64,000 bases of DNA from Penicillus capitatus (Eukaryota > Plantae > Chlorophyta), in NCBI GenBank assembly GCA_965649825.1, contig OZ287696.1, positions 477,101 to 541,100 of the forward strand, written 5' to 3'. A program made the translations under genes and the position numbers. Below, one piece after another: positions 1-48,904 of the stretch (positions are counted from its first letter, which is position 1; every line of letters begins with the position of its first letter). Under the pieces are notes generated by a model, which saw only the letters and a list, made by a program, of their open reading frames with translations, did not search any database and was not told where the DNA came from.

Positions 1-596
1 TCACAACGTCGGATCCAGACCCAACCTCTGACATAGCCAGCGCACCAACCTTCTCTCCTGCCATCCAGTCACTGCTGGAAGAATGCCATGGGATGTCGAG
101 CGATAAAGTCTCTATACCTGAGATAAGATCGGGCAAGTACCTTAATGCCTGATCTTTGGTGGCATGTCGCTGTAACTGAGAGATGCAGATGTTGCTATGG
201 GCACCATACGCCAAGGCAATGGATCCCGAGGCTCGACTGAGCTCTTCCATGGCGATACAATGGTGCAAGTAGCTTAATCCGAGGCCCCCATAGGCTGGAG
301 ACGCGGTAATACCTAAAAACAGGGTTGTGTCTGCTATGATCTAATGAGGAGTGTCGAATACCGTGCAGTCCGAAGTCTGCCATGCGTTTCCATAGGTTCA
401 CTTCAGAGGGAAAGCTGTTCTCCTGGTCCACTCGAGCCGCATAGGGGGCTATGTGCTCACGGGCAAAATCATGTACGACGGTTCGAAATTCCTCGACATC
501 TTCAAAGCCTTCATTGCTGGCAATTTCGCCGAGATCTCGCTTGGTAAGACGTTGCACCGACGTATATCGCCACAATCGACGTGCAGCGCACCGCAT
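1..596 (-). CDS. IVD: Isovaleryl-CoA dehydrogenase, mitochondrial (3' end runs off the window)
   Basis: Spliced reading MRCAARR...[20 protein letters not shown]...[12 protein letters not shown]|[46 protein letters not shown]...YLPDLISG|[18 protein letters not shown]. These are acyl-CoA dehydrogenase/IVD signatures, with two GT-AG introns and an N-terminal presequence. Confidence 0.93.
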
Positions 597-7097: not shown

Positions 7098-10000
7098 CTA
7101 CACTTCGAACGTTGTTGGACCAAATCCGTCGCAGTGCAATGCCCACATCTTATGAAACACCTTTTCGAGGTCTTTAACCCATCCCGCTGTGTCGAACAAT
7201 GGACAGGACAATCTTCGACGCTTTAACTCTTCTCTTAATCCAATACGTTTCTCATGATTCAAGCCTAGCTCCACAGCTTTCTCTTCGTACTCGACATGAT
7301 CCGTAACCACCATTTCACTCCCGAGACCGGTAGCCGTGCACAGACTCGCAGCCACACGAGATGCCATACGATCCAAGGGAAGAGTGATCATGGGACATCC
7401 ACCCCATAATACATCACAGCCTGTTGTGTGGGCATTGCACAGAGGGGTATCCAGGAAGACATCGGCCAAGCCAGAACGTTTGATATGGATATCTTTCTGT
7501 GCCACGTCTGTGAAAATGATTCTGTTGTGATCAACACCGTGATCCACAGCTCTTTGGCGGATCTTCTGTTCGCCGTAGGGAGGAAAACGCAACAACCAGA
7601 GAACGGAATCCGGAACGCGGTTCAAGATATTGCACCACGCTTCGAATGTCCTGGGATCGTATTTATACAGCTGATTGGAGCATGAGTAGATGATCTTGTC
7701 CTCGGGCAGTCCAAAATCGGTTCTGCTCGGCAAGTTCTCCCCTGTCAACAGATCTCTGTGTTGCTGTTTGTAGTCGTTGACAAAATAACAGTTGGGCATT
7801 AAGGCCAGTTTCTCTGAATAGCAGTCCCAGTGCTCTTGAGGGGCGACGACTTTGTCGGTGATCAAATACGGCAAGAAGGATGCACCTGTCGTTGCAGGGA
7901 ATCCCATGTACGAAGTCTGGATGGGAGCCGGAAGCAAAGCAAAGATCTCATTTCTGGCTCCTTTGGTATATCCATTTAAGTTTACGGCAATCTGGATACC
8001 GTCAGCAGAAATTTTGCCGGCGATATCGACGACGTTCCAGGAGGAGACATCAACGAAATGCTCGGCTTCTCGTTCGATCTTCTGACGCCATTCGGAATCA
8101 TCATTGGGGGAAAGCGCATAGCAGAACACTTCTATCTCCATACGATCATGGTATCCAAATACTGAGGCCATAAGATGCGACAGGGGATGGTTGCCAAAAT
8201 CACTGCTGACATATCCGATCTTCAATCTCTGTCCCGGAACCAGATGCGTGGCAGGCGGATGTGCAAACTTAGGCGCACCCAGACGCGATGCCGTCATCAA
8301 GCAGTGCTCTGCGTACTTCTTGCTAATTTCCAGTGCCAGATCTCGCGAGAAGGGATAGGCCATTGCATGGAAAGGCTGGACGGGTGGCAGCCTTCCGTTT
8401 GCCAGATCACGACGCACTTCACTCTCCAGTCTGAAAAAGAGATTGTCTCGGTCTTGCCAATCGCAGATACACTGCAAACTATGGACCAGATTAGCAAACG
8501 CCTCTGGGAAATCTGGACGAATCGTCAAGGCTCTTTTATAAGATGCAATCGCCACATCGTGCCGTGCTGCATCCTTGTATGCCGATGCCAGATTGGCATG
8601 AGCTTCAGGTGATTCAGGCTGCAACAGGGCAATGTGCTCGTAGCAGGAGATAGCTTCTGCTGCTCGTCCTTGCATCTTCAGAATGCCGCCCAGGTTGTTG
8701 TAAGCAACGGCCAATCTCTGCGCTTGTTGGGCAGCTGCAATTTGTGGATTGGTGCGATAGGCAGCTGCCATTGCAGCATTCTGAGGACGCTGGTACTGTA
8801 ACTGAATGCAGGATGTGTAACATTGAATGGCTTCTTCAGTACGGCCGGCTTCACGGAATGCGTTTCCCAAGTTATTGTAGGCTTCGGGAAAGTTAGGTTC
8901 AATCACGAGCGCTTGTTGATAAGTCTGAATGGATTGAGCCAATTTTCCTTGGTCGTAATAGATTCCTGTAAACTCCCCAGATTCAATGCAATCACTCTTT
9001 CAAAGAAGCTGGAAGGAACCTGCAAGGTTTCCAAGAGAGAGGGCACATCCCGGTCGGAGTTTGACCACTCGCTCAAAACATGCAGCAGCGTCGTCTTTTC
9101 TCTTGAGTTCTTTCAGGGAAACACCCATGCCTGTATAGGCATCGGCATAGTTCAGCTTCACTCTTATTGCTTGCTACACCATTCAAGAGTGGAATTTGAA
9201 TCAGAATGGCAAATGGGATGCTACTTCATAGCACATGACAGCTTGAAGGTGGTTTCCAGCTTCACGGAACAAGTCTCCCAAACCACGCCATGCCGGCGCA
9301 TAGGCTTTATTCAAACGCAGTGCTTCAGAGTAACATCTCTGAGCTGCCTGTCTGCCAACTTGTCCCTGAGCTCTCCACAAGTCACCCAGATTGTTATGTA
9401 CATCGACCTGTCACATCATATGCTTCGTTTGTAACGCGCTCGCGACATCGTGACAGAAACGCACTAGATTCGGATCTAGACGTAAAGCTGTCATGTAGCA
9501 TTCCATGGCTTGCGGAATTAGTCCCTTCTGCACAAGAGCACTCGCCATATTGTTATAAGCATCTGTGAAGCCTGGTTTCAATCGAATGGCAGACTGGAAA
9601 CACACAGACAACGACAGTATCTCGACAGGTGTCTTGTGGTGGATGTCGGACCTGATAGTAGATAATGGCCATATCATAATTTCCCATTTGTTGTAAAGCA
9701 TTAGCCAGATTAGCGTGCGCCTCTGCCATTGTTGGATCCAGAAGAATACATCGGTCGTTAAAGGCGATACATTGCTCATAGTTCTTCATCTGATAATAGA
9801 TCGCCCCTATCAAGAGCAAGACTTCGGTTCGATTTGAGTTCTCGACATATGCCTATCCAGCCAAACAGATGCATAACAGATAGATGGACAGATTCAGGCA
9901 CACGTACAGGTTGGCAGTTCTGTAGAGCCAGAGGGTAGTTTCCTTGACGATACGCTTCGTGCGCTTGACGTAGCAGCAGCTCTGGATCTTGCAACATGAC

Positions 10001-18478: not shown

Positions 18479-20201
18479 ATGATGCTTCCGAAGACGCTGA
18501 GCGTGGGTACGTCGCTGCGGACCCCGCCTTTCGATATCCACGACCGATGCCGCGTCTGTCAACTGACGCTATCCCATTCGACTCCCAAACGCAGGCCTAT
18601 TGCCAAATGTAAACTTCAGCCGCCGTCAGTAGTTCAGATGTCGCAGTATGGTGCCATCCAGTGACGCCTTTGCCCATTCGAACGAACCGTTCGCTAAAGA
18701 AGGAGAGAATCGTTCGTCTCCAGTCCATGTCGGGCTCGACCCACGCATCCAATCAAAATGTCCCCAAGAGAATTGCGATTCTTGTTGAGCCTTCTCCTTT
18801 CACCTATGTCTCTGGATACAAAAATCGATTCTGCAATACGATCAAGCATCTGGTGGAGGCGGGATGCGAAGTGATGGTTGTGACCACAGGTACAGCACAT
18901 AATGTTGATGAAGTGACGGCTGCATCATCTGTGATGCATACAGGTCGAGGGTTTAAGTGGCCAGGGGCTGACAGTTCTGCCATGAAAGATGCGCCGGAAA
19001 CATATTATGGCGCACAGGTGGTCAATAGCTACAGCTTTGGATTTCCGTTCTATCCACAATTGCCTTTGACCCTCGGTCTCTCTCCACGAATCTACAAAAA
19101 ATTGGCAGACTTCAAACCAGATATTATTCATTGCAGTACACCTGGTTTCCTGGTGTTCGCTGCATGGGTCTACTCAAAGTTGCTCAAAGTGCCTCTGGCG
19201 CTGTCTTACCACACACATGTCCCAAAGTATGCGCCAAAATACAATGTGGCCTTTTTGGTGCCGCTGCTTTGGACTCTCATTCGCATGATGCACACCGCTG
19301 CTCAACTGACACTCCTCACGAGCACGTTGATGCAGAAGGAATTCCGTTCTGAGAAAGCCGCCCCAGACGAGACACTACACGTCTGTCTTCTCGCCCAGTG
19401 TGATTGGATGCATGTATGAGAGATGTGTGATTAGGTGTGGCGCAAGGGAGTGGATACAGAGGTCTTCCATCCTCGGTTCCGTTCTCCAGAGATGCGTAAG
19501 AGGCTGACAGATGGTCATCCCGAAGATCCAGTGATGGTTTATGTCGGCCGCCTTGGTAGTGAAAAGAACTTGACCTTTCTCAAAGCAATTATGGCACGTC
19601 TGCCACATCTACGTCTGGCCTTCGTTGGCGATGGGCCCTCAAGGGAAGAACTCGAATCCTCCTTTGCCGGAACGAAGACGGTGTTCATGGGAATGCTGCA
19701 TGGAGAAGAGCTATCGGCCGCTTATGCCAGTGCCGATGTCTTTGTCATGCCGTCCGAGACAGAAACACTTGGTTTTGTGGTAATGGAGGCCATGGCTTCA
19801 CAGATACCTGTCGTGGCTGTTCGAGCTGGCGGTATTCCGGACATCATCGATGATAAACGTACTCGTTTGTTGCTACACACATTTCTGTCAGGGGTTCTGG
19901 TGTAGAGAAGGGCGGATTTCTCTATGACTCTGGTGATGTGACAGCAGCAACGTCGCTGGTTCAGTCACTCATCGAAAATGAAGACTACAGGTGAGGCGTG
20001 ATGACGTGACAGGCTGTATAACGGATGTGATTGTGTAGAATGAAAATGGGCATGGAAGCGCGTGCACAAGTGCAACGATGGGACTGGAGAGCAGCAACCA
20101 TGCATTTGCTGACAGTGCTGTACCCCATGGCTATCGCCCGATTCAAAGAACAAGCTGCCGAAAATCAGACAATGCCAAACCCTGCTCCTGCGGCAATCTG
20201 A
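18479..20201 (+). CDS. SQD2: Sulfoquinovosyltransferase (sulfolipid synthase, GT4)
   Basis: RIAILVEPSPFTYVSGYKNRF, SYHTHVPKY, WRKGVDTEVFHP, YVGRLGSEKN, FVGDGP, FVMPSETETLGFVVMEAMAS, RWDWRAAT. A transit-peptide-like first exon starts at 18479. Confidence 0.95.
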
Positions 20202-20451: not shown

Positions 20452-22622
20452 TTATTTGAGAAGACTCTTGACAACGCTCTTGACATGAAGACGCTTCAAA
20501 TCGACGTAGGTCTGGCCGCATCCGACGAACACAATAGGCGCCCCAGAGGTGTAGACCATGGAACAGGCTGCCCCAACCTATCATCCATCATTCATGTCAT
20601 CGCAAAGGGGAGTGTATGGAAAACGCGAGTACTTTGTCGTCAATGGTATCAAACTTGGTCAACACGATTCCGTCGATCAAGTGTGGCTTCACACTTCGGG
20701 AGAGGTCTGCCAAGCGCTGGTTGAATTTCGTCAGCTGATCGACGGCATCGTTGCCAACGAGGGCCTCTCCCACAAACAGCACCAAATCAGGCTCGTTCAA
20801 GTTGATTAGACCAGAAAGGGCACGCATCAACGGTTCATTGTCTTGCATGCGACCTGAAGGAACAGTGCGTTCGAGACTCAAGGGCCTGCCTGTCACATCA
20901 AAGGGTCTACCCGCTGTGTCGACCAGAAGGACATCGATGCCTTTGTTCTGTGCTTCTCGAGTGGCCTCAAATGCAACCTTGGCAGGATCTTTCTCGTAGC
21001 CCCTTTCAAAGAGTGGGACTTGGAGACGCTGGCAGTGAGTACGAAGCTGTTCGACAGCTCCTGCACGGAAAGTATCGCAGGCCGCAATCATCACCTACGA
21101 TCGTTCATTGTCTTCGGAACAGATAGTGCCGACAGAGACAGGTATACCTTGTTTTTGTTTTGCAGCAACCAGTAGGCAATTTTGGCCAAGTTTGTCGATT
21201 TGCCCACCCCATTAACACCGACGAATACAATGACGTAGGGTTTTGCCCTAGCCCTCGTGCGTTCGATCTCTGCCAGGATATTGATCGATCTCTTGGGTGT
21301 CAAGATGCGTTCCAATGCTTCGCCAAAGGCGCTTACAACGGCAGAAGAGACACCTGTAAAGCTCTGGAGTTTCTGTCCCTCCAAATTGAGCGCCACAGAT
21401 TCACACAGTCTACACACAGCATAACACTCAACCTTTGCTGCTAACAAGGTATCATACTTTTCTGCAATCTCCTGCGCCACATTGCGCTCCATGAGCTTGC
21501 GTTTCATGCTGTCCAGTGCATTCTGGAAATCATCTCTCTTTAAGGCGTTACTGCCCATGACGTTTACAGAGATTCCGCGCCAAAAGGAAGACAGCATTCC
21601 TGAAGATGGCTTTCCTGGTTTCTCTTCCTCCTCCGCAATCTCGATATCCGAATCGTCCGTTTCTTCCATTCGACTCACGTCTTTCAAATCTAATGCCTCT
21701 TCCACTCTTGCATTGCCATTAACAGAGTAGTCCAGTTTCTTAACATCAGACGTCTCCGCCCAAACCCGTTTTTCTTTTTTCTTTGCCGTGGTGGCAGATG
21801 GTTTCTCCTTCTCTTTGGTAGTTTTGCTCCGAGCGACAGTGGTTTTGTTGTTGCCACGCATTCCTTTTCCCTTGAGCTTGCTCACATCAAACGCCGAGTC
21901 TTCCTGAACATATCCATCCTCTCAGGTCATGAACTGTCACATCCATCAGAGTATCAAAGATTACTGATGATCTTTCGTGTGTCGGAGGAGAGACATCGCG
22001 GCTGTTCGTGTCTGCCGTGATGCCATCCTCCTCATCCTCGTCCGTTTTTTCTTGTGTCGTGTCCGCCTTGACGCCATGACTTGTTGCATTTTTCTACATC
22101 CACACACTCGTCTCGTCAGTCTTCGGCCAATTCATGGCCAGACAGACCTTAATATTGACATGAGGTCGGTTTTTAAGTGTGAGATGTTGCTTTCGTTTTA
22201 CATCAACTTCCATCTCACACTTTTTTAAGACTTTCCTGAACGTGTCTTCAAACGCATCGTAGCGACTAATGTCGGGTTTATAGACGACAGCAAATTCATC
22301 GCGTATTTTTTCGAGAAGCGCATCGACGTACAGCAGCGACAACGCTTTTTGATACACAGCTACGAATACCAAGCTGAGTCCCTGTCGAACGCACACCATC
22401 GGCTCATGCATCGCGGTAGTGCATGCATACATTATGAAAACTCCATTTGAGGGTGTATGGTGCGCCTTGGGTAGGCGCATAGTCGTAGCTGTCGCTTCCC
22501 GCACGGTCTTCCAACAAGCAGTCTCGAATGAGCGACCCTACGGGGTCACCACGGAGCGCCGCCAACTGAAACGTCCATAGCAATGCACCGCCGCGTGTAA
22601 AAATCGCAAAGTAGTCTAGCAT
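20452..22622 (-). CDS. SRPRA: Signal recognition particle receptor alpha subunit
   Basis: [16 protein letters not shown] (SRX domain), [66 protein letters not shown]. Confidence 0.96.
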
Positions 22623-22694: not shown

Positions 22695-23774
22695 ATGTAT
22701 GGAGCATGGACCGGCGTCGCCCTCGGAGCGCTGTTTTGGCTGTGGCGCCGAGCGCGGAGAAGAAGACAACGCGAACAGGAACAGAATCGCCGTGCCCATC
22801 TGCCTGCGAACAACGACCTCTCGGAAGCGACGTCTCTAGTCGTCACGAACGCTCAGAACGTTGAACTGCATGTGCGGCTCTGGGAGGCCCAGACAGCAGA
22901 AGGCGTCGTCCTTGCCATCCATACCTTTGCATGGAACTCAGCATGCTTTGCCGAATTGGCTGAGACATTGAAACCGCGCCATTTCAACGTGGTTGCCTAC
23001 GATTTGCAAGGACACGGATGCAGTGGCAGCAACGAAAACACGCGGGGCGATCTGCGCCGATTCGATCATTTCTTAACGGATGCTGAAAAGCTCATTCACT
23101 TTACGAAGCAGACGTATCCCCAACTGCCTCTGTTTGTATTGGGAGACGGATTTGGAGCCACACTAGCCCTACACGTGGCCCTTCGATCAGATCGGCAGAT
23201 TCAAGGCTTGGTGCTATGCGGACCTTATGTACTGCCAGATCTCGATCAGCACCCGCCCAGTCATATCACTCCCGTGCTCTTCGCTTTGCAGAAGCTCCTC
23301 CCAGATCTGAGGATTTCGACAGTGGAAATGGGAAAGAACCCGGTTCATCGAGAAACGGACCCCCCATTGCAGTCACCAACACTGCGGTTTTTCGTAAGGG
23401 CACACCGATCGCTGAAGCATCTTAGAAAACGCGTGCATCAACTGAAATGTCCTTTTATCACCTTACATGCCGCCTGTGACCCAAGAGCTTCGTCTCAGCA
23501 TTCGAGAGAGCTCTTCTCCAGAGCCAAATCCCAAGAGAAGACGCTCATGATCTATGACAACAAGCATAGCTGCCTGTTCGGAGAGAACGAAGAAGATCGA
23601 AGTCATGTGATGACGGATATTCTTGCATGGCTGGATGCCAGAACGCATGCCTTCGAGCGATCGCCTCGAGCCGAACAACCACCACAGAGAGAAGCAATAC
23701 CCTCCACTTCTGAATGTTCTATTTCCAAACGTCAGCAACGATTCCTCGATCTCATGAGTCGCAATGGTTTCTGA
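22695..23774 (+). CDS. Membrane-anchored Hydrolase_4 family protein lacking the catalytic serine (pseudo-lipase), intronless
   Basis: N-terminal TM followed by an Arg-rich stretch; VAYDLQGHGCS, FDHFLTD. The elbow reads LFVLGDGFG instead of GxSxG. Asp (LHAACD) and His (NKHSCL) are retained. Confidence 0.82.
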   Translation: MYGAWTGVALGALFWLWRRARRRRQREQEQNRRAHLPANNDLSEATSLVVTNAQNVELHVRLWEAQTAEGVVLAIHTFAWNSACFAELAETLKPRHFNVVAYDLQGHGCSGSNENTRGDLRRFDHFLTDAEKLIHFTKQTYPQLPLFVLGDGFGATLALHVALRSDRQIQGLVLCGPYVLPDLDQHPPSHITPVLFALQKLLPDLRISTVEMGKNPVHRETDPPLQSPTLRFFVRAHRSLKHLRKRVHQLKCPFITLHAACDPRASSQHSRELFSRAKSQEKTLMIYDNKHSCLFGENEEDRSHVMTDILAWLDARTHAFERSPRAEQPPQREAIPSTSECSISKRQQRFLDLMSRNGF

Positions 23775-24492: not shown

Positions 24493-25944
24493 TCAACGCA
24501 TTTTCAGGGCGTATATGGATTCCTCTGCTGCTCTGTCCAGCGCATTCCTCGCCTCGGGCAGAGAGGTCAGTAGTGCCAGCATGCCCATTACTGTGCCTTT
24601 GTATGCCTGGCTAATTCTCCTTGAGAGTTTTCTGTCTCCACTCTCCTAATCCACATGCTCAGAGAACAGCGAAATATAAAAGTGTCATACTTCTGCCGCT
24701 GTCTTCAATTTCGTCTGGTATTTGTCGAAGACTCTTCTGACAAGTGGTTTCCAGATTCGACCACGGGCATTGACGAACCAGTTGTTAATCTGAGCGATCT
24801 TCAGACCTGTGGTAAGGCTCAAAGCCACTTTCTCCTGGCTGACAGGATAGGGCATCATTAAGTGCGACAGGAGCCATTCCTTCAATATGGCTGTTGTTTT
24901 CTTTGGCAAGTTTTCGCGTTTTGGGTGAACGCGGCGCTTCGTAGAAGGACGACAGAGTTGCCTCTGCTCTGTCTCTGCTATGCTTTGTAGTGGAAGCTCT
25001 GAGTAGATGTAAGACTGTCCTGAGAGCTGTGTGTGACAATGAGTGACATCCTTTGTTGGTTGAAGATGTCCACGGGGCGAAAGACAATGATTGACTGACC
25101 AATTTCGCCCATCATCGTCTCCACTCGATACGACAATGCTTCTGTGAAGTTGTCCCCCTCCTGCAGTGTAGTGCATTTGCGAATCCGCTGTCAGCCATTC
25201 TGGATTCTGCGTTTGGGTCATCAAGTGCGGTACTGTAGGTAACCGAGGCGGATTTGACATCCGTGCTCTCTCAAATGTCATGGAAGAGTGATGACCATAC
25301 ACTCCTCTGTTGCATCTCGCATTGGTGTATGGATCACACGGAGCTTCGGCAAGAAATTCTGCTGATCTATAAGTATTCCCTGTATCGTGCACAAAACGAA
25401 AAGGATTGACGTGAGGGTCTTGTCCCGTTGGAAACATCATCTAACATCGCAAGTGTCAATGCGCTGCTTGCTCTCTGCGGTATGCCTTACTTGTCGGTTC
25501 GATCCATTGTCATGCATTCTGTTGAGGGCTGTTCTGAATTCAGCATCGGCCATAGTGGCTCTTTTCGTATTTCGATGGCAAAGCATCTCATGCTCCACGT
25601 CGACAGAGCTTCTGTACGTGTCGCTAAGATCATCCGATGGACCCTCGGGTCTATTCATGATGCCTCGCACAGATCCAAAGACAGCCTGGTTCCCAACCCC
25701 TCTGTTGCTATTGGTGCGATAATCTGCCATTTCTGATCTTAAACGAATGCCATCTTGCAGTCTGCTGAAGTTCGGTAGATCGGTCATTGATGGCATTAGT
25801 TTCATCTTCAGAAAGGACTCCAGTCCATCCGTCATCGAGCTTCGTCTCATGGCGTTCGTTTCATCTGGAAGCACTGCAAAGCGAAACAGATGTCTGACAC
25901 CGGTGGATCAATAGGCTCAGCTTACCAGAATTATCCGACGTCAT
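24493..25944 (-). CDS. TALE-class (BELL-like) homeodomain transcription factor
   Basis: RENLPKKTTAILKEWLLSHLMMPYPVSQEKVALSLTTGLKIAQINNWFVNARGRIWKP with the PYP loop. Four-exon model MTSDNS|VLPDE...|MMFPTG...KTAAE|AYKGTV...LKMR*. Confidence 0.88.
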
Positions 25945-33100: not shown

Positions 33101-36100
33101 GTGATTGTACGAAAGGATCGCCCATACTTACCTGTACAAAGACTCATAGACGGGGTTCTTGAGCACACTCACAGGGAGAGGATCTAGATCCAGGAGTTCT
33201 GTATGTGAAGGCATGGATTGCGGTAGAATCATGGTCTTGAACGAGATCGGCATGAATGCTTCGGAGCCCAGCCAGGTGTCATGTATCACACGGACAATGT
33301 ACTGTGTGGGCAGAGGTTGGACGATTGGAATAGCAAAGGTCATTCGATGGACGCCCTCTCTCATCATGTTCCGTGTCAGGATCCACGATTCTTGATGATA
33401 AATAATCTCCGTTTCGGTATCGACGACCCATACAAGCCACTTCATCTGATTTCCATGATGCTTCTCCTGTACATAAGAAAAAGGTCACATCACCTAGGAA
33501 TGATCCCGGGGTAGGGCATACCTGCCATCTAAATGTTGGCATCAGTTCGAGGCGGACTTGAACGACCGTTGACGTAATGGGCTGCATTTGGCCATGCAGT
33601 TCCAGAGATGGAAAAAACGCCAGGCATTCCTGTATGACAATCCCAGCAGAGGGATGATTGAGGAGTCTCTGGACCTCAGCCGATTCCAAATCCGCTAGAT
33701 CGTCAAGCGACATCTTCTTCTTCTCCAGTTTGTTTGCCAGGCTCTCTGGCAGCAGAGGACTGAACTGCCTCAGTGGATGCATATGTGGCCAAATCTTCCT
33801 CTCCAGAGCTTTGCATAGATCCAGCAATGTCACGGCAGATGTGCTCCATCCACGTTTCATACAGATCTCAAACAACGCTCGGCAAATGCGTGGGGCATTC
33901 TGTGAGATGTACATCATATCGGCGACGAGGGAAAAGGCTTCCACTGTTTGGTGTGAGACATAGGTCTGAATCAGAACATTGACCTTTCCAGGGGGCTCCT
34001 CCACGGCATCCCTCACGGCAAACGGACACCCTTGCATAAGTTGTTCGAGCTCCTGCAGCTCCTCCTCTCGCACCATGATGTTCTCGAACTCATGGCACTC
34101 TGAAATCAGGGCCAAGATCTCAGAAGTGCTCATGCTATTGTGCAGCGTCTCGTTGAAATGGTGGATGGATTCATGGTGGATGTAGAAATGACTGGCGATT
34201 CTGCCCTGTTCGGTGACGTAAAGCTGTCCAGATCTGCCATCGAATCGCGACATACGGCAACGATTGAGTTCTTTTGCAGCTTGAATGATCAGATCCCTTC
34301 GGTGCTCTTCGAGATGCCGATCTGCCATGACACTTTCCCAGGTGATCCCATAGACCAAAGGATTTTGAACAGAGCGGATGTGCATGTAGGTATAAGACAG
34401 CCAAGCAGATGCTTCCTTGATATTGGAGACAGTGCCCAAGACAATCTCTGCATTCAGATGATCGACAAGACCTGAAGCAAAATGCGATTCGATTGGGACT
34501 CTCGATGTCAACATTCCTGAAACGTCACATCACATGGCCATGGTCTCAGCATAAGGTCCGCACCTAAGTAGTCTGCAAGTTTTGCATGCGTTGTGATGAT
34601 GATGCCTTCTCCTGTCACATCAAATTGCGGCCGACCAGCACGGCCAAAGATCTGTTGGACGTCCAAAAGGCCGATATCTGTAAACTTCCCCTGCTGGGCG
34701 TCATAGAGCTGAGTGCCTTTGATGATGACGGTATGGGCTGGTAAGTTTACGCCCCAAGCCAATGTCGCTGTACAGCAGAGGACTTTGATACGTCCCTTTG
34801 AGAAATTCCTCTCCATCAGATTCCGATCCGATCTCAACATTCCGGCATGGTGTATCCCGATCCCTGCACATAGAGACAGCTTCGTCTCAGCTTCTATTCT
34901 CTCATGGACCAACCTGAAGAAAAGAGTTCCACCATCTCTCTGTTCCTGGATTTCTGGATCTCTTTCTTGACCAGAGGGTAGATCTCTTTGTCTTCGCACG
35001 AGAAGAGCTGCGTGTAATTTCTGCCTTGACTCGTCTCTGCCAAGAAACGACCCGTTTTGCCTGTCTCCTTGCGCGAATGAACAAATACCATTGCCTGTTT
35101 TCCTTTCCTTAAGGCATCGACGACCTGAACATCAGCTGTCTATACAGTACTGTTTGGATGGTAATACGGGAGACTTTGAGAAAGCAGATCTCATTCATGA
35201 GATTGTTGCGTCGTACGAATTGGGGCTCGGTCACACCTAGAAACTGCATAGCCAGGGGGACAGGACGATAGGAGGCATCAAAAAAGAACAATCCAGTCTC
35301 CAGATTCACGGCAAGGAACTGCGCAACATCTTTGTAGTTGGGCAGCGTTGCAGAGAGTCCAACAATACGAATCATGCTCTGCGAGACTTCGACCTGCAGG
35401 ACACTGTAGAGACAGGCACTTGAAGCTGGCTGGAAGCTGTACTTGACGCAAGGTACGAGCGACGATGGTCTCAATCACTGGCCCACGACTGTCGTTGAGC
35501 AGGTGGACTTCATCAATGATCAGGAGCTTCACAAGAGATGAAATATCCACTTCTCCGCCCTTTCGAGTAATGACATCCCACTTCTCAGGAGTGCTGACAA
35601 TCATCTGCGTTTCTGCAAGTTCCTTCTTGCTCAGCTGCATGTCTCCTGTCCATTCTTTCACTGTCAGGCCAAGCGGTGCCAGTCTCTTGGAGAACGTGGC
35701 CGTCATCTCAGCTGCCAACGCTTTCATCGGAGCAATGTAAATAATCTTGAAGGCCGATTTCTGTACGACACCATGCTGAATGTGCTGTCCAATCTCTCTC
35801 AATACAGTGATCATGGCAATGTTTGTCTTTCCTGCTCCAGTTGGAGCGCAGACAAGAAGATTCTCATTCGAGTGAAAAGCTGCTGGGAAGATTCGGCTCT
35901 GAATTCGATTGAGTGATGTGTACCCCTCGAAAGCTAATTGGGCCCAATCCTTCAGGTCTGCAATTTGAACGAGAACATCCTCTGCCTTTGGCTTTGCCCT
36001 GACTGCCGGAATACTGATCTCTTCGTAGCCTTTGAGAACTCTGCAGAGAAGCCAGTTGTGGCAGAAATGCCTTGTATGGATGGATCACCTCCGCACAGAT

Positions 36101-39231: not shown

Positions 39232-42055
39232 TCATAGTAGATCTGCATCAAAACAACCAATAAGGAAGAATGGCAATGAAAAACTGATGAACAGAAAAAG
39301 AGAATGCGCATAATGCGCGCGATGCGCAGAAGAAGATGTGCTCTCATCCTCTCCATCGACTGCTGCTTCGTCTTCCAAGCCGCTTTGCTGTCCTACATCC
39401 TTGAGAGCTGCTAAACAATGTTCACAGCAGATCGATTCCGCGTTGTCCATAGGATTCTCCAGATTCATCGGGCAGAAGACAGGGGCATCGTTCTCTTTGA
39501 TTCTGATGTCGAAGAAGTCGGCAGTATCGTCGGGCACGTCTGTACTATTTATGCATTGCTGAATTGAGGGCATGGAATTCTCAGTGTCACGCTCGATCAA
39601 ATACAGCTCTTCCTGCCAACAACAACACCACCGTGTGTGTCGATGTGGACAGGATGACCTTACGGTGCAGATTTCTGGTGCCTCATTTACAGATTTGAAT
39701 TCACAGATGTAGTCAAGCGCGTCGTGGCAATTGCGAACGGCAACATTGTAACGCGTGCCTCGTGCGTCGATCGCTGCACATCGCTCATCTGCAGCAATAG
39801 CGGCATCATTGCGTGTCCAGAAATCTTCTCTCGTCTCCATCTTCCGTGCCTTACCCGAAAGCCAACCCCATTTCTCGTCTCTGGAAGGAGATTTCAAGCC
39901 AATCCATGCGGAGTCCACTGAGGAGAGACTCGAAAGCAGAGATTGCTCGTGAAGGGAACGTATCTCAGCTAAAGTACCGCCCATTTCTCGGCAGATCTGT
40001 CGTGCTTGATTGAAGCTGACATGCTGTTGGGATTCCTTCGATGCAACATATACCCTCTCCGTCGAGGAATCTTTGTAGCACTCTGCTTTGGGATACACGC
40101 TCGGACATTCCTTTTCTTTTCCCCTCAGTATCTGCAGCAATTGGATGAGTGCAGGGCGACACGAGAGACGCCGAGCACTTGGACTTGACAGCGATCGATG
40201 GGGTAGACAGAACACTGACCGATGTGACGAGATAGCTGTCCCACAACCTCAGAGTAACTCAATCCATTCTCTTCGAGAGTCGTTAGGGGAATATCGACGG
40301 CGACGACGCCGAGGAGCTTTCCTCTCCGTGGACCGTTCGCAGCATGAGAGAACATGGGACGTGTGGCTGTCGTCATCAGACCCAGTCCGCTAAAGTCCTC
40401 ATAAAATCGGCTCCAAATGATCCTCTTTTCATTCTCTATCAATTGACCAGCGAAGAAGCTGATGTACGGCAACAGTTGTTCCAAGATATCTTGACCCGCT
40501 ACGAACGAACATCTGTGCTGTTCTCTGAATGGACAGGAGAGAGGAGTACGTTCAATGTGCATGTGTGTTCCGTTGTGTAAGCAGGCAATGCGTTGAGGGA
40601 GTCGGAAGTCTGCGTCTTCTCCTACAGTGATCACGAAAATTGACGCTTTTCCATGAACGTGTGATGGCTCTAATGTCTCCTGTTGCTTATCCAGCGAATC
40701 CAGGATTCCATGAGCCTTATCATGAAAATCTGAACAATCATGGACATCTCCTTCAGCACAGAGCCAGCCATCTGTGATCCAAAAAATGACCTGGAATCAC
40801 ACAAAAGAGTGAGAAAAGAGTGAGATCATCACGAGGATGGACTTGTTGGCATCCAGTCGACTTTATTTCCTCCTGTTGAGCTCGTCGGAATGTGTGAAAT
40901 GCCGTTTTCAAGCCATCCACTGTGCTTTTCTTTCCATGTGGTCTTGCCTCATCTAATCGACTTTTCAACGTGACTTTGTTGGTATCACTAGCACCCATCA
41001 GCACAGCATCATCATCATCCCGTTCAAAATCCTCATCCCCCACAATAACTAATCGCATAGCATCTGCAAAGTGCAACAAATCAATAGCGGTCTTCGCAGC
41101 CTCCTTCGCCAAATCCCATCTTGTTGCCGATGAGTTAGAACCGGCACGCAGCGCCATCGAACCTGACAACCGCCATTCAATCACACTGTATCCATATGGC
41201 ACAGGAGAAAAAGATTACTCGAGGCATCCAGCAAGAAAACAATATCTTTGGGAGCACTCGTGGCATCCGAATACCAAGGACGCGCCCTCTGCATCACACA
41301 AACGCACACTGCCCCATTCAATGCGCGAAGCGAGAAAGAGAAGGTCAACCGGATCGTATTGCTCGCAATGACCGAGGTGAACATCGCTTGGACCATCTGT
41401 CAATCCCCTTGGGGATGCTGCTCCGGGATATGTTCTGCACAGTGTCCATCACCCTCTGCACTTAGCACAGTGGGTCCTTTATGGGAAGGATTCTTACATC
41501 GCAATGCCTCCAGATGTGCCAAAGTATATCCAGCTGTCAGCTGTTGGCTCCAGCAATCTAAATGCGTCTTGGAGCCCCTGGGACAGTCCCTCGCATCTTG
41601 CTCACGGGTGTGAATCAGATCACTTGATAGATACAGGATTCTTCTGCAATGAGAGGTGCTAGATTCAGCGGGTCTACATTCGGTGGCGTTGTTATATATC
41701 CATGCTCTAACGAGATCTGTAATGCGTGTTTGTCGAAAGCGGGTTGCTTGGCTCGGTGACGGTTACGTACTTTTCGCGTCGTGCAGGTGTCTCCGCAGAC
41801 GCCCATAGACCCAACGCGGTTGCTGCAGGATTGGAAGGTATCCAAAGAATGCGAGCATGCATGATGAGCACATGTGCAGTTTCGGGCTATCTCCCGCTTG
41901 TTATGATATCCAGCCTCAATCGTCTCGGATAACGTCTGCAGCATGTCCGTGGCTCTGAAACGGGTATTGACGCGTTCGAGAGCATCCGGCTCCGAATCCG
42001 ATGTGACGAGGAAAAGGAATAGCGCTAGAAGCCCGAGTTGTCGACGCTTCGTCAT
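39232..42055 (-). CDS. Alpha2delta/CACHD1-like secreted protein: signal peptide, dCache with inserted VWA, C-type lectin domain, GPI-like tail
   Basis: MTKRRQLGLLALFLFLVTS; YDP|RARPWY; PKDIVFLLDAS|SSM; GKKSTVDG; WITDG; WSRFYEDFSGLGLMTTATRP; GKLLGVVAVD. The CTLD reads ARQICREMGGTLAEI..SAWIGL..ERCAAI..RNCHDALDYICE, and the C-terminus is hydrophobic. Confidence 0.85.
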
Positions 42056-42170: not shown

Positions 42171-43284
42171 ATGTCGGCGTCCAATAAGGCTGGGCCTAGC
42201 GCCAGTGACAAAGAGAGCAATTCAGGTCGCGAGGAACTGATGCAACATGCTGTCGAGTTCCTCCAGCATCCAAAAGTGGTGCATTTTGTGTGAGATGTGG
42301 GTAAAGGGGGAGTGACGGGTTAGGTACGAGATGCAACGGACGACGCTAAAAAAGCTTTTCTCAAGAAACAGGGACTCACGGATGACGACATCGCTTTAGC
42401 CTTTGCGACGGTCCGCCTTCGAGAGAACCGATCTCTGACGTTGGGTCCACCCGCAGAACCACCTTCGTTTTTTCGAAATTTCGTCGGGAAGGTATACGCG
42501 TCACGAAGTCTTTGCGTCGATCACTATCGACTGCTCTCTAGGGTCTAATGGCATTGAGTGTCGTGGGAGGCGTTGCCGTGAGCGCCGGTCCTTTTCTACA
42601 TCGATGTTATACCGAGATGAAAGACATTCTGACGTCGATCCAGGAAGACGCCCAGCGCCAACGCATTGATTTAGAGCGCCTGGCAGATACCTATTCTCAC
42701 GGATTGGATGCCATCAAATCCGAACTGGATGAGTAATCTCATACAGCCAATGGCCGTTCTGAGATGACCGTTCTAGTGTCCGTCATCTTCAAGGGAAGCA
42801 GTCCGAAGAGGTCGTTGCCGTGAGACGGAAGATCGGCGAGATTCGCAGAACGTTGGACAGGGAGCTAGAGAGCCGGAATAAACTTCGGGAAGAGGAACCA
42901 GATTTGCTGACATTGGAACGTGCCTGTAGTCCCATTAGTTCTTTAGATGATCAGCCAGGCGTAGAAGATCGTATCTTCAACCCTTTGTACGGATCGGAAT
43001 AGAGCAACGTGGATGTGACTGTAGAGGCGGCTGCATCTTCTGCTGCCCATCAAAGCGCAGCCCATCACGTCGTTGCTCCGTCAAGTGCAGTGAGCGGAAC
43101 GCTGCTTGATCAAGTCCAATCACAAGATGCTCTGCAGCCAAACGGTTCGTGTCCCATGGCGACAGAGACAGAACAGAAAAGTGAACAGGAGTGTGAGAGA
43201 GAAGGTGCTGGAACCGACAAGGAGCTGGATTATGAACCGACCTATCCTGGCGGCGGCGTTGTCATGTACAGAATTCGTAACTAA
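42171..43284 (+). CDS. PEX14: Peroxisomal membrane docking protein PEX14 (3' end approximate)
   Basis: Pex14_N motif REELMQHAVEFLQHPK|VRDATDDAKKAFLKKQGLTDDDIALAF, followed by a hydrophobic segment and a coiled coil. Confidence 0.8.
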
Positions 43285-46691: not shown

Positions 46692-48904
46692 TCAAGAAGT
46701 TTCAGAAAGGCATGTCTGATCGCCTCCGGATGTTTCATATAGCAGAATGTAAGCTTGCGATTTCAGTACTTCGGATAGCGATGCCTTTCGCACATCGGAA
46801 TCGCTCACATCGTACCATTGCTGTTCTCCATTGACGGTTCTCGATACAAAAGCTGTGTAGTGTCCAAAACTCAAGCTTCCAGAATGGCAGACCACCGCCT
46901 TGAGCGCATACCTACCATCCAGAACACCACCCTCAATACATATGCATGCATGAGTGGACGTCATAGATCATACTCGGCCGTGCTGGTGGAAGAACTATTA
47001 GGGTCAACAAACGCATTGACGTTCATTTTGGTCTCAAATTTGACAGCGTGTGCCAACTTGCTTATATGTCGCTGTCCCAAAACCTCAAACCGCTTGAGAT
47101 GAATGCACAAGACCTTTGGCGCTTTCCATACGAAATACTGTTTCGTGGAATTCAACGGAGGAATCGGAGGCAGCGGCTCGCGGCTCTTCTTTTTCAGACA
47201 TGGCTTCAGATCGGATTCTTTGCGCGTGTTGGCAGAAGTAGATTCTGTCGTAGCATCTGATGTCTCTCCAGTCGCTTCATCCTCACACTTATCTTCCGAG
47301 TCTTCCTCCTCATCATCCGAAGGGTAGTACTTCCAATTGACTGCTTTGCTCTCGTATGAAGATGGCAAGACGAAAACCTCCGGCCGATCTGAAAACGACA
47401 CTCTTTTCTCTGGATACTCTCCAGCACAGCGCCATGTCACACTTTCGTGGGCAAAGAAATGTTGTAGACACTCATCGAGAGTCTGAAACCGCCGAGCGTC
47501 GCTCACGACCTCAGATTCCTCAACGTCAAAATCAAGATCCTCAAATCGATTGGCCTTTTTTCTTTCTTTCTTCTTGCCTTTTCGTCTTCCTCTGCCGGCG
47601 AAGACCTCATTGTTCACTGTTTCTGGATGCTCCTTGTCGTACAACGACGTCACACTGTCCAGCAAATTGGACGATGTGTCGCTCTGCGAATGTTCTTCCT
47701 CCTCTTCCTCTTCGTCATTGGCAAATAGATCTTGCAGGGCATACCACATATCATCGTTCATTGTGCTTTCTTCTTCGTTTTGCACAACCTCTGATGCACT
47801 ATCATCCACACAGTTATTCTGAAGAGAGCTCTGGTCTGGGGCTGATTGAAGATGCGCTAATGCGCCTGGATCGTTTCTCTCGACGACGTCAGGCAAAACG
47901 GAATCTCTCGACAGTGCACACGATGCAGGTGTTGCATCCACAGAACAGCACGAAGTATCGTCTCTCAGAACAGAAATACTCAGAACTAAAAAATCTTCCT
48001 CTCTTGACTAATGGCAGACCTAACATGATCACTGAGCATACAGAAGAACCATACCTTAATGTACCCACAGCTCTTGCAGGTGATCTTGGATGTCAGTTTG
48101 CCACCAAAAACCTCGTCCATCCAATTCGAATCGCCTTCCTTGTACCTTCCAGCTTCTTCCTAAACAGACAGAAAGATTACAGTAGAAGAGAATCTCACTC
48201 TTACATCTAACTCACAACAAGATGACGGAGAAGAGTCAGTAAGAGTTCATGTGCATCGTGTTGTCCTTTACTCTATATCACAGCATTTAACCTCCTGTCT
48301 GTTTACATGTCCACCTTCCATGCAGACAGGTCCTTGCCTTGAAGAGCGGCTCCGCCACCCGTATGGCTGTTAGCGCTCGATTCGGCTTAAACTGAAATCT
48401 CTTCTCTCCTAAACAGACGCACATCTCGATAACCAGATATTTACCATAAGGAACAGAATGCACCATTTTTTAGAGTGAGATCAAAGAGCTCACACATCGC
48501 GGCCGTAAGCGAGGACGGCGTCATGACTTCTTTAAGATCGCTGCGAGCGAAACAGTTTTTGAGACACGCGCTCGACAGGAGGAGTTGTAAGACGGAATTG
48601 AAATAGCAGGTATTGCGCAGATTGGCCAACCCGACAACACTCCATTTCTCCTCTCCATTCTTCGTCGCCGACGACGAAGCAGTCGCCGTAGACGTTCCTG
48701 CGACATCTCTCTTTCCCTCTGCATCTCTCCTCTCATCAATCTACACAGCTTCGTGGCACGGTCGTTTCGCCGTTTGGTTGGTACGTTCGGTTCTGTGGCA
48801 GAGTTGGACGTCGACGCGAGTGGTGTCTTTTTTGCGTTATTTCGCTTCTGCTTGTTTGTATTCTTACGCCCTTGGGAGCGCTTTTTCCTTTGTTTCCGTC
48901 CCAT
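46692..48904 (-). CDS. Ubiquitin-specific protease (peptidase C19)
   Basis: Cys box GLANLRNTCYFNSVLQ, FK|SKGQHDAHELL, FGGKLTSKITCKSC, LDECLQHFFAHE, PKVLCIHLKRF, and His box VCHSGSLSFGHYTAFV...WYDVSDS...AYILLYE. Confidence 0.93.

Follow-up and report, generated by a model that had tools for sequence, protein, structure and literature searches.

The animal alpha2delta proteins count among the major drug targets, yet what they did ancestrally, independently of channels, is unclear. In cryo-EM structures of alpha2delta-1, residues Tyr238, Arg243, Trp245, Tyr452, Asp454, Thr463 and Asp493 touch both L-Leu and gabapentin (10.1101/2022.12.05.519047), and Gumerov et al. 2022, PNAS (PMC8915833) describe mutagenesis in bacteria and in alpha2delta-1 that tested the link between the underlying amino-acid motif and function. 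According to Moran and Zakon 2014, alpha2delta was not to be found beyond animals (PMC4202318); Gumerov et al. later reported dCache_1AA proteins with an inserted VWA domain, single-dCache forms included, from most eukaryotic supergroups including Archaeplastida. Here we describe a gene of this family in 64,000 nucleotides of the green alga Penicillus capitatus (contig OZ287696.1, positions 477,101 to 541,100 of the forward strand; this whole stretch is referred to as the window). Its 780-residue product consists, in order, of a putative signal peptide, a Cys-rich N-terminus, a Cache (PDC) module split by a VWA domain, a long-form C-type lectin-like domain (CTLD), a 6-Cys module, an acidic linker and a hydrophobic C-terminus. 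On balance, this is probably a tethered surface protein, a putative co-receptor that would bind a free amino acid or a similar ligand in its closed pocket and act through a partner.

A Cache module interrupted by a VWA domain

A first-pass annotation had likened the protein to alpha2delta and CACHD1, and homology searches assigned its N-terminal two thirds to their VWA-interrupted Cache module. When a two-sequence profile of the N-terminal module was compared with the PDB, alpha2delta-1 chains were the sole match (E 1e-15, chain residues 155-498), spanning the pre-motif segment, YDxRxRPWY, the whole VWA domain and the post-VWA segment ending ...LGVMGVDV. Residues 155-248 of alpha2delta-1 align with residues 96-193 of the window protein and 430-498 with 412-500, so that the VWA domain (Pfam residues 196-387) sits between W186/Y187 and Y424. 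The Cache module's N-terminal part also aligns with PctA and other bacterial dCache_1 amino-acid sensors.

For 33 family members, the window protein among them, the VWA domain was excised in silico and a profile was built from what remained. This profile matched alpha2delta-1 (2e-27) and CACHD1 (2.6e-27, contiguous over 715-833) as well as the bacterial sensors PctA (4.8e-14), Mlp37 (1e-12), Mlp24, PctB and PctC (each ~5e-10) and Tlp3 (1e-4). In Pfam, the unexcised protein matched the first PDC module of dCache domains from chemoreceptors below threshold; the excised window sequence matched Pfam MCP-like_PDC_1 with 30.3 bits, the gathering cut-off being 27. From these profile and Pfam matches, which lie well outside chance, a Cache ligand-binding module interrupted by VWA is established at the sequence level.

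Pocket positions were mapped by HMMER alignments, using the L-Leu- and gabapentin-lining residues of rabbit alpha2delta-1 (10.1101/2022.12.05.519047). Trp207, Tyr238, Arg243, Trp245, Tyr452, Asp454, Thr463 and Asp493 correspond to W142, Y179, R184, W186, Y424, D426, T435 and D460 of the window protein, respectively, and the mapped positions are invariant across five orthologs. Among 156 relatives, the column of Y179 holds Tyr in 114 and Phe in 31, R184 is Arg in 145, W186 is Trp in 147, Y424 is Tyr in 140, T435 is Thr in 131 and D460 is Asp in 136; the mean column identity of the family alignments is only 16-29%. The amino-acid motif Y-x4-R-x-W(Y)...Y...D, which the first-pass annotation had recognised in its split arrangement, is present in full (Y179, R184, W186, Y187, Y424 and D460) and unchanged in the five orthologs, with a spacing from Tyr to Asp of 35 residues (given as '~27-34' in the main text of PMC8915833).

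The positions that face the ligand side chain differ from those of alpha2delta-1 (V209 to Y144, Y219 to T154, A455 to F427 and L456 to S428). At a further position, occupied by Ala217 in alpha2delta-1, a Phe has been reported to block bulky ligands in alpha2delta-3/4 (PMC9901441); the window protein has Ala152 there, from which tolerance of larger side chains would be predicted, and most family members have Phe, Met or Tyr. From these alignments it is reasonable to infer that the ligand class is an alpha-amino acid-like zwitterion, with side-chain preference and gabapentin binding not predictable.

The following mechanism is proposed. As a member of the eukaryotic 'Cache with inserted VWA' family, which includes the distant relatives of animal alpha2delta and CACHD1, the protein would be a glycoprotein that is secreted and tethered to the membrane; in its clade, known to date from chlorophyte green algae, a CTLD and a small Cys-rich stalk come after the Cache-VWA module. 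The ligand of the closed Cache pocket would be an L-amino acid in free form or a small amino-carboxylate resembling one; Y179, R184 and W186 would clamp the alpha-carboxylate, as in alpha2delta-1 and bacterial chemoreceptors, and Y424, D426 and D460 the alpha-amino group. Because the 780-residue protein is without a cytosolic domain, ligand occupancy would have to be conveyed by a partner located in that membrane or by changes in trafficking or stability, in the manner of alpha2delta and CACHD1. The VWA domain and the non-canonical CTLD may serve as protein or glycan contact surfaces, a classical metal-bridged MIDAS (metal ion-dependent adhesion site) or Ca2+-sugar site being unlikely.

The VWA domain and the C-type lectin-like domain

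A complete MIDAS had been claimed for the VWA domain, with the Thr of GKKST (T285) as one of its residues. This assignment did not survive alignment. T285 lies two residues downstream of the MIDAS Thr column and is not conserved; in a 156-sequence alignment the column itself holds Thr in 121 sequences and Ser in 10, and the window protein has Lys283 there. The other residues of the site (D202, S204, S206 and D318) are conserved. The closest, Caulerpa-type orthologs read G-x-K, whereas G-x-T-N/D-F is retained by the Caulerpa, Ostreobium, Neomeris and Chloropicon paralogs. Since Lys occupies the Thr column in this protein as in its orthologs, the orthogroup has a degenerate MIDAS, and Lys for Thr is a lineage-specific and apparently selected change of the metal site.

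This substitution bears on whether the protein could be an auxiliary extracellular subunit of an algal four-domain voltage-gated Ca2+ channel, controlling its trafficking or gating with the amino-acid pocket as a modulator. The closest solved relative is alpha2delta-1, both proteins run from a signal peptide through Cache(VWA) to a hydrophobic GPI-like C-terminal end, homologs of the CaV alpha1 subunit exist in green algae (PMC4202318), and the Chloropicon homolog is annotated as a 'voltage-dependent calcium channel subunit'. That name, however, is an automatic transfer and not evidence. Moreover, alpha2delta-1/2 need an intact MIDAS, which coordinates an Asp of alpha1, for current enhancement (PMC9901441), whereas the MIDAS Thr is Lys across the whole orthogroup, and the second dCache (VGCC_alpha2), a large share of alpha2delta, is missing. 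CACHD1 provides a precedent for work with non-channel partners such as Frizzled and LRP6 (PMC7615972). We regard a channel subunit as quite unlikely. Two defining features of the alpha2delta family are lacking, since the second dCache is missing and the MIDAS on which alpha2delta-1/2 depend for channel enhancement is not intact; the algal protein is not an alpha2delta ortholog.

In place of the second dCache of alpha2delta, the window protein carries the CTLD that the first-pass annotation had described, with WIGL and the core cysteines and without EPN/QPD or WND. Pfam Lectin_C (PF00059) matched at 1.2e-15 over profile positions 3-107 of 107, and a Pfam search gave no match to PF08473 or PF02743 outside the split module. 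CTLDs of the mannose receptor, DEC-205 and DC-SIGN were matched in the PDB, a Foldseek search with the model of an ortholog (P0003) returned langerin, NKp80 and CD94, and the six CTLD cysteines are invariant in the five orthologs. In an alignment to mannose-receptor CTLDs the EPN/QPD and WND Ca2+/sugar motifs were absent, V-A-V before C633 occupying the WND position. By these alignments the CTLD is genuine but non-canonical. Animal C-type lectin receptors (mannose receptor, DEC-205, DC-SIGN, langerin) have the same WIGL and long-form six-Cys signature; in contrast to theirs, the algal CTLD is devoid of both motifs and occurs singly, appended to Cache-VWA.

With a Cache-VWA profile, HMMER was run exhaustively against 1.84 billion representatives; 1492 proteins reached E<=1e-3, and 86 reached E<=1e-30. 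Most of the 1492 are 450-900 residues long and cover the whole module, and the family falls into dozens of 50%-identity clusters. Pfam Lectin_C was found in 23 of 78 top relatives, and a local CTLD hidden Markov model was positive in ~35 of 150 representatives; a search with a 31-sequence profile was dominated by animal mannose receptors and added one ortholog. In a rough neighbour-joining tree the CTLD bearers fall in one clade (35 of 47 leaves), which suggests that the CTLD joined Cache-VWA in a single fusion event.

Exact look-ups placed CTLD-bearing members in Bryopsis, Caulerpa, Ostreobium, Neomeris and Chloropicon. Proteins of the same architecture are Chloropicon primus QDZ18890.1 (entry names 'voltage-dependent calcium channel subunit' and 'C-type lectin domain-containing protein'), Bryopsis sp. 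KO-2023 GMH32949.1, Ostreobium quekettii CAD7695492.1, CAD7696239.1, CAD7702828.1 and CAD7697429.1, Caulerpa lentillifera g1464 and g7071, and Neomeris dumetosa transcripts. All have Cache(VWA) followed by the CTLD and belong to the same clade of the tree, at 26-42% identity to the window protein (best matches 40-42%). Most of these paralogs keep the MIDAS Thr, and several have a transmembrane segment with a cytosolic tail of 65-155 residues. No experimental characterisation of the Chloropicon, Bryopsis, Ostreobium, Caulerpa or Neomeris proteins was found.

A Bryopsis genome preprint identified zero C-type lectins (10.1101/2023.11.22.568388). Contrary to that survey, the Bryopsis protein named above (P0006) matches Pfam Lectin_C at 4.5e-12. 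From the clade it is evident that Bryopsis and other green algae do have C-type lectin-like domains; those of siphonous green algae seem to have been overlooked.

Given these domains, the protein could instead function mainly in adhesion, matrix or wound response, with VWA and CTLD mediating aggregation of cell surfaces or cytoplasm, wound plugging or attachment in siphonous algae. The pocket of the Cache module would then be structural or constitutively occupied and not a sensor. VWA and CTLD are classical adhesion modules, and a C-terminal tether with a Cys-rich stalk suits surface display. Several paralogs occur in Bryopsidales (four Ostreobium proteins, two in Caulerpa), a group in which lectin-mediated wound healing is known (10.1101/2023.11.22.568388). 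Against this, the CTLD is without a Ca2+/sugar motif and the MIDAS of this orthogroup is degenerate. Furthermore, the ligand-clamping residues are the most conserved positions family-wide, including in unicellular Chloropicon, which argues for a selected small-molecule site. A mainly adhesive role appears unlikely. The roles in settlement or symbiont recognition that the first-pass annotation raised are speculative.

For the amino-acid-binding surface protein that we prefer, several observations weigh on the other side. Motif presence is no guarantee of a given ligand, because alpha2delta-3/-4 keep the motif without binding gabapentinoids or bulky amino acids (PMC9901441). The loss of the MIDAS Thr makes the alpha2delta mode of channel docking questionable. 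A second, membrane-proximal PDC module was undetected by profiles and probably has no room, only 46 residues separating D460 from the first CTLD cysteine; the Pfam dCache_1 match covers positions 91-157 of 240 only, and PctA was matched over 84-174 only. The label 'dCache' used in the first-pass annotation is therefore doubtful, its ligand-binding PDC module alone being detectable. In bacterial dCache receptors it is the membrane-proximal module that transmits signals.

In an AlphaFold2 model of the ortholog P0003, built from a 10-row alignment, the mean predicted local distance difference test score (pLDDT) was 52, with 23-37 in the Cache parts and acceptable values in VWA and CTLD. Foldseek ranked alpha2delta-1 chains first, at low TM-score, followed by generic VWA proteins and CTLDs. 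Because the model is unreliable in both Cache parts, the fold assigned to them rests on the profile evidence. Three further points count against the preferred reading: the anchor type, since a glycosylphosphatidylinositol (GPI) signal is compatible with the C-terminus by eye and clade relatives with transmembrane-plus-tail forms exist; the splice model, which depends on GT-AG rules and agreement with homologs; and the function proposed for the CTLD clade members, which is predicted from sequence.

A broader proposal is that the chlorophyte Cache-VWA-CTLD clade constitutes an unrecognised class of extracellular amino-acid receptor, independent of Ca2+ channels, in which a tethered or single-pass protein would couple pocket occupancy to partner engagement by the lectin or VWA domain. 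We consider this possible but doubtful. If true, green algae, including giant single-celled seaweeds, could sense dissolved amino acids released from wounds, bacteria or hosts, and a role of alpha2delta-like proteins that preceded their recruitment to animal channels would be revealed. The size of the family, together with RNA interference now working in Bryopsis (PMC12961179), makes function testable.

Gene model, protein ends and locus

The features of the gene are listed in the table. Every string that had been quoted from this locus, including YDP/RARPWY, DAS/SS, GKKST, ITDG, WSRFYEDFSGLGLMTT and LLGVVAVD, is present on the minus strand after intron removal, as are the signal-like start, Cys-rich N-terminus, acidic linker, SSSA and hydrophobic end; the boundaries given for it (39232-42055) coincide exactly with the ATG and stop of the final model.

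Table. Positions of the Cache-VWA-CTLD gene and its features in the window, with residue numbers of the 780-residue product
Feature	Residues	Window positions	Strand	Remarks
Coding region	1-780	39232..42055	-	ATG 42055-42053; stop ends 39232
Exons 1-5		42055-41771, 41716-41624, 41577-41498, 41434-41350, 41288-41219	-	
Exons 6-10		41162-40843, 40790-40550, 40498-40179, 40131-39664, 39612-39232	-	
Probable in-frame, stop-free intron, 51 nt		40499..40549	-	GTACTC...CGTAG; inside VWA domain
Signal-peptide-like N-terminus	1-20	41996..42055	-	MTKRRQLGLLALFLFLVTSD; read from sequence
N-terminal Cys-rich region	21-95	41771..41995	-	C60, C62, C67, C77, C87, C91
Cache/PDC, N-terminal part	96-193	41253..41716	-	Crosses three introns; contains W142, A152
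YDPRARPWY segment		41271-41358	-	Y179, R184, W186, Y187; within Cache/PDC N-terminal part
VWA domain, inserted in Cache module	194-411	40440..41252	-	Pfam VWA_2 2e-9, VWA 1.4e-5
MIDAS D-x-S-x-S	D202, S204, S206	41158-41228	-	
MIDAS T-D	T317-D318	40767-40775	-	
Lys at canonical MIDAS Thr position	K283	40927-40929	-	From columns of 156-sequence alignment
Cache/PDC, C-terminal part	412-500	40126..40439	-	WSRFYEDFSGLGLMTT (Y424, D426, T435); LLGVVAVD (D460); conserved two-Cys segment (C487, C495)
CTLD, long form	503-648	39682..40119	-	C507, C516, C545, C616, C633, C641; WIGL at 574
6-Cys module	649-725	39400..39681	-	C653, C674, C701, C716, C717, C720; ...PVFCP...CCxxCL; conserved
Acidic linker; Ser-rich SSSA stretch and hydrophobic C-terminus	726-745; 746-780	39235..39399	-	Read from sequence

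Minus-strand frames were translated, GT-AG introns enumerated and the model corrected by tblastn with Caulerpa lentillifera g1464.t1 (P0001); the choice of splice sites followed GT-AG rules together with collinearity and residue-by-residue agreement with four homologs (P0001 and P0003-5). A naive 812-residue model, in which exons 2-3 were misframed and one intron was 38 nt long, was replaced after the tblastn comparison. In the final model nine introns separate the ten exons, all GT-AG and 46-63 nt long. The product aligns collinearly from one end to the other with five orthologs (40-42% identity), and none of the conserved Cys and motif residues is lost.

Could the motifs line up because exons were chosen to fit, in what would be a gene-model artefact or a pseudogene? 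Splice sites were picked from sequence with homolog guidance, and an in-frame, stop-free intron is unprovable from sequence alone. The motif-bearing segments, however, lie inside long exons, apart from two split sites: intron 41349-41289 divides YDP/RARPWY and intron 41218-41163 divides DAS/SS, and for each there is one frame-preserving GT-AG solution, which reproduces the homolog sequence. The consistency of the introns and the collinearity with orthologs throughout speak against such an origin as well. In addition, an ortholog on a Caulerpa-like genomic contig (L001, 975-3341, GC 42%) encodes the same protein in a nearly intron-free open reading frame. An artefact is thus very improbable, and the locus is a real, intact nuclear gene of a green alga, whose closest relatives, as judged by sequence similarity, are siphonous (Bryopsidales-type) green algae.

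The one in-frame case concerns nucleotides 40549-40499, whose retention would add 17 residues to the VWA domain and give a product of 797 instead of 780 residues. All homologs, among them the uninterrupted genomic reading frame of L001, are without these residues, and lengths match exactly after removal, so the stretch is very probably an intron. The ortholog in L001 has a single intron, at the position of intron 1 of the window gene, and is otherwise one reading frame, which indicates large intron gain or loss between related algae. The public model of P0001 is without 16 residues at ~447-450 (the LMTT...PMF strand of the Cache module) that the window gene, alpha2delta and the uninterrupted L001 frame all have; this gap is probably a mis-predicted annotation intron.

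The protein begins with the signal-like sequence MTKRRQLGLLALFLFLV, and homologs begin with MTKLL... or MTKH... and a hydrophobic stretch. The Cys pattern of residues 21-95 is kept in the family consensus. A Pfam search gave zero matches for the N-terminal Cys-rich region and for the C-terminal 6-Cys module. Both segments (N-terminal 6 Cys; C-terminal C-x-C...CPxxL...CCxxCL) are common to the CTLD-bearing clade and may be undescribed small domains. At the C-terminus, SSSA is followed by an 8-residue spacer, 17 hydrophobic residues and DADLL, so that five residues lie between the hydrophobic stretch and the stop. Such an end may resemble a signal for GPI attachment or may be a membrane anchor that leaves almost nothing in the cytosol. 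Orthologs have the same layout, while among full-length clade members roughly half have a terminal hydrophobic end and the other half a transmembrane segment with a 65-155-residue tail.

A PEX14-like gene (42174-42560, plus strand; Pfam Pex14_N 1.2e-13) is divergent from the Cache-VWA-CTLD gene and starts ~115 bp from its ATG, and the two probably share a short bidirectional promoter region. Neighbouring long reading frames encode an O-GlcNAc transferase (GT41+TPR; 7098-8942, minus), a GT4 glycosyltransferase (18661-19419, plus), SRP receptor alpha (21091-21885, minus), an alpha/beta hydrolase (22695-23774, plus), a TALE homeobox protein (24685-25440, minus), a Brr2/SNRNP200 Sec63 domain (33279-34514, minus) and a ubiquitin hydrolase (46961-47941, minus). 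These housekeeping eukaryotic neighbours fit a nuclear algal chromosome segment. No channel gene lies within the 64-kb window.

Comparison with animal and bacterial Cache proteins

The architecture had been thought undescribed. Database entries exist for the Bryopsis, Caulerpa, Ostreobium, Neomeris and Chloropicon proteins; a literature search found no paper combining dCache, VWA and C-type lectin, and the claim holds to that extent for the lectin fusion. The window protein has the Cache module, the VWA insertion and the amino-acid motif of the Cache-with-VWA family of Gumerov et al. 2022 (PMC8915833) and belongs to it. That family was already reported in silico, and what is said here of function is by inference. 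In contrast, the CTLD clade, its Cys-rich stalk and the orthogroup with Lys for the MIDAS Thr are not described in the main text of that paper, where the word 'lectin' occurs 0 times. The Cache(VWA) family is known, and we found no printed description of the chlorophyte clade with an appended CTLD.

Bacterial dCache_1AA domains (PctA 5LTX, PctC 5LTV, Mlp37 6IOP, Mlp24 3C8C, Tlp3 4XMQ) have the same PDC module and motif after removal of the VWA domain. They are uninterrupted, carry a second, membrane-proximal PDC module and connect to a transmembrane helix and to a signalling domain in the cytoplasm; the algal protein shows no sign of these features.

In animal alpha2delta (CACNA2D1-4; PDB 7MIX chain D, 6JP5 chain F) the VWA domain interrupts the Cache at the same point, and YDxRxRPWY...WxxxYxD...GLxxT...GVxGxD is kept residue for residue. 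A signal peptide at one end, a hydrophobic segment at the C-terminal end and virtually nothing on the cytosolic side are common to both proteins. Unlike alpha2delta, the algal protein is without the second dCache/VGCC_alpha2 region and without the long VWA_N helical region; its N-terminus is Cys-rich, its MIDAS Thr is replaced by Lys, and a CTLD and a 6-Cys module follow the Cache. Identity is only ~20-25% in the aligned parts. Because the algal relative keeps the pocket, has a lectin-type domain in exchange for the second Cache and has lost the MIDAS Thr, it offers a natural experiment on the pocket by itself.

CACHD1 (PDB 8S7C) is an alpha2delta-like surface protein with a degenerate MIDAS, as in the algal orthogroup. 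The first-pass annotation had placed its amino-acid motif in the VWA-split Cache; according to the main text of PMC8915833 the motif lies in the second, uninterrupted dCache, and it is this domain that aligns contiguously with the VWA-excised algal module. CACHD1 differs from the algal protein in having two dCache domains, a transmembrane helix with a cytosolic tail and no CTLD. The two C-terminal forms found within the algal clade echo the split between alpha2delta (GPI) and CACHD1 (transmembrane).

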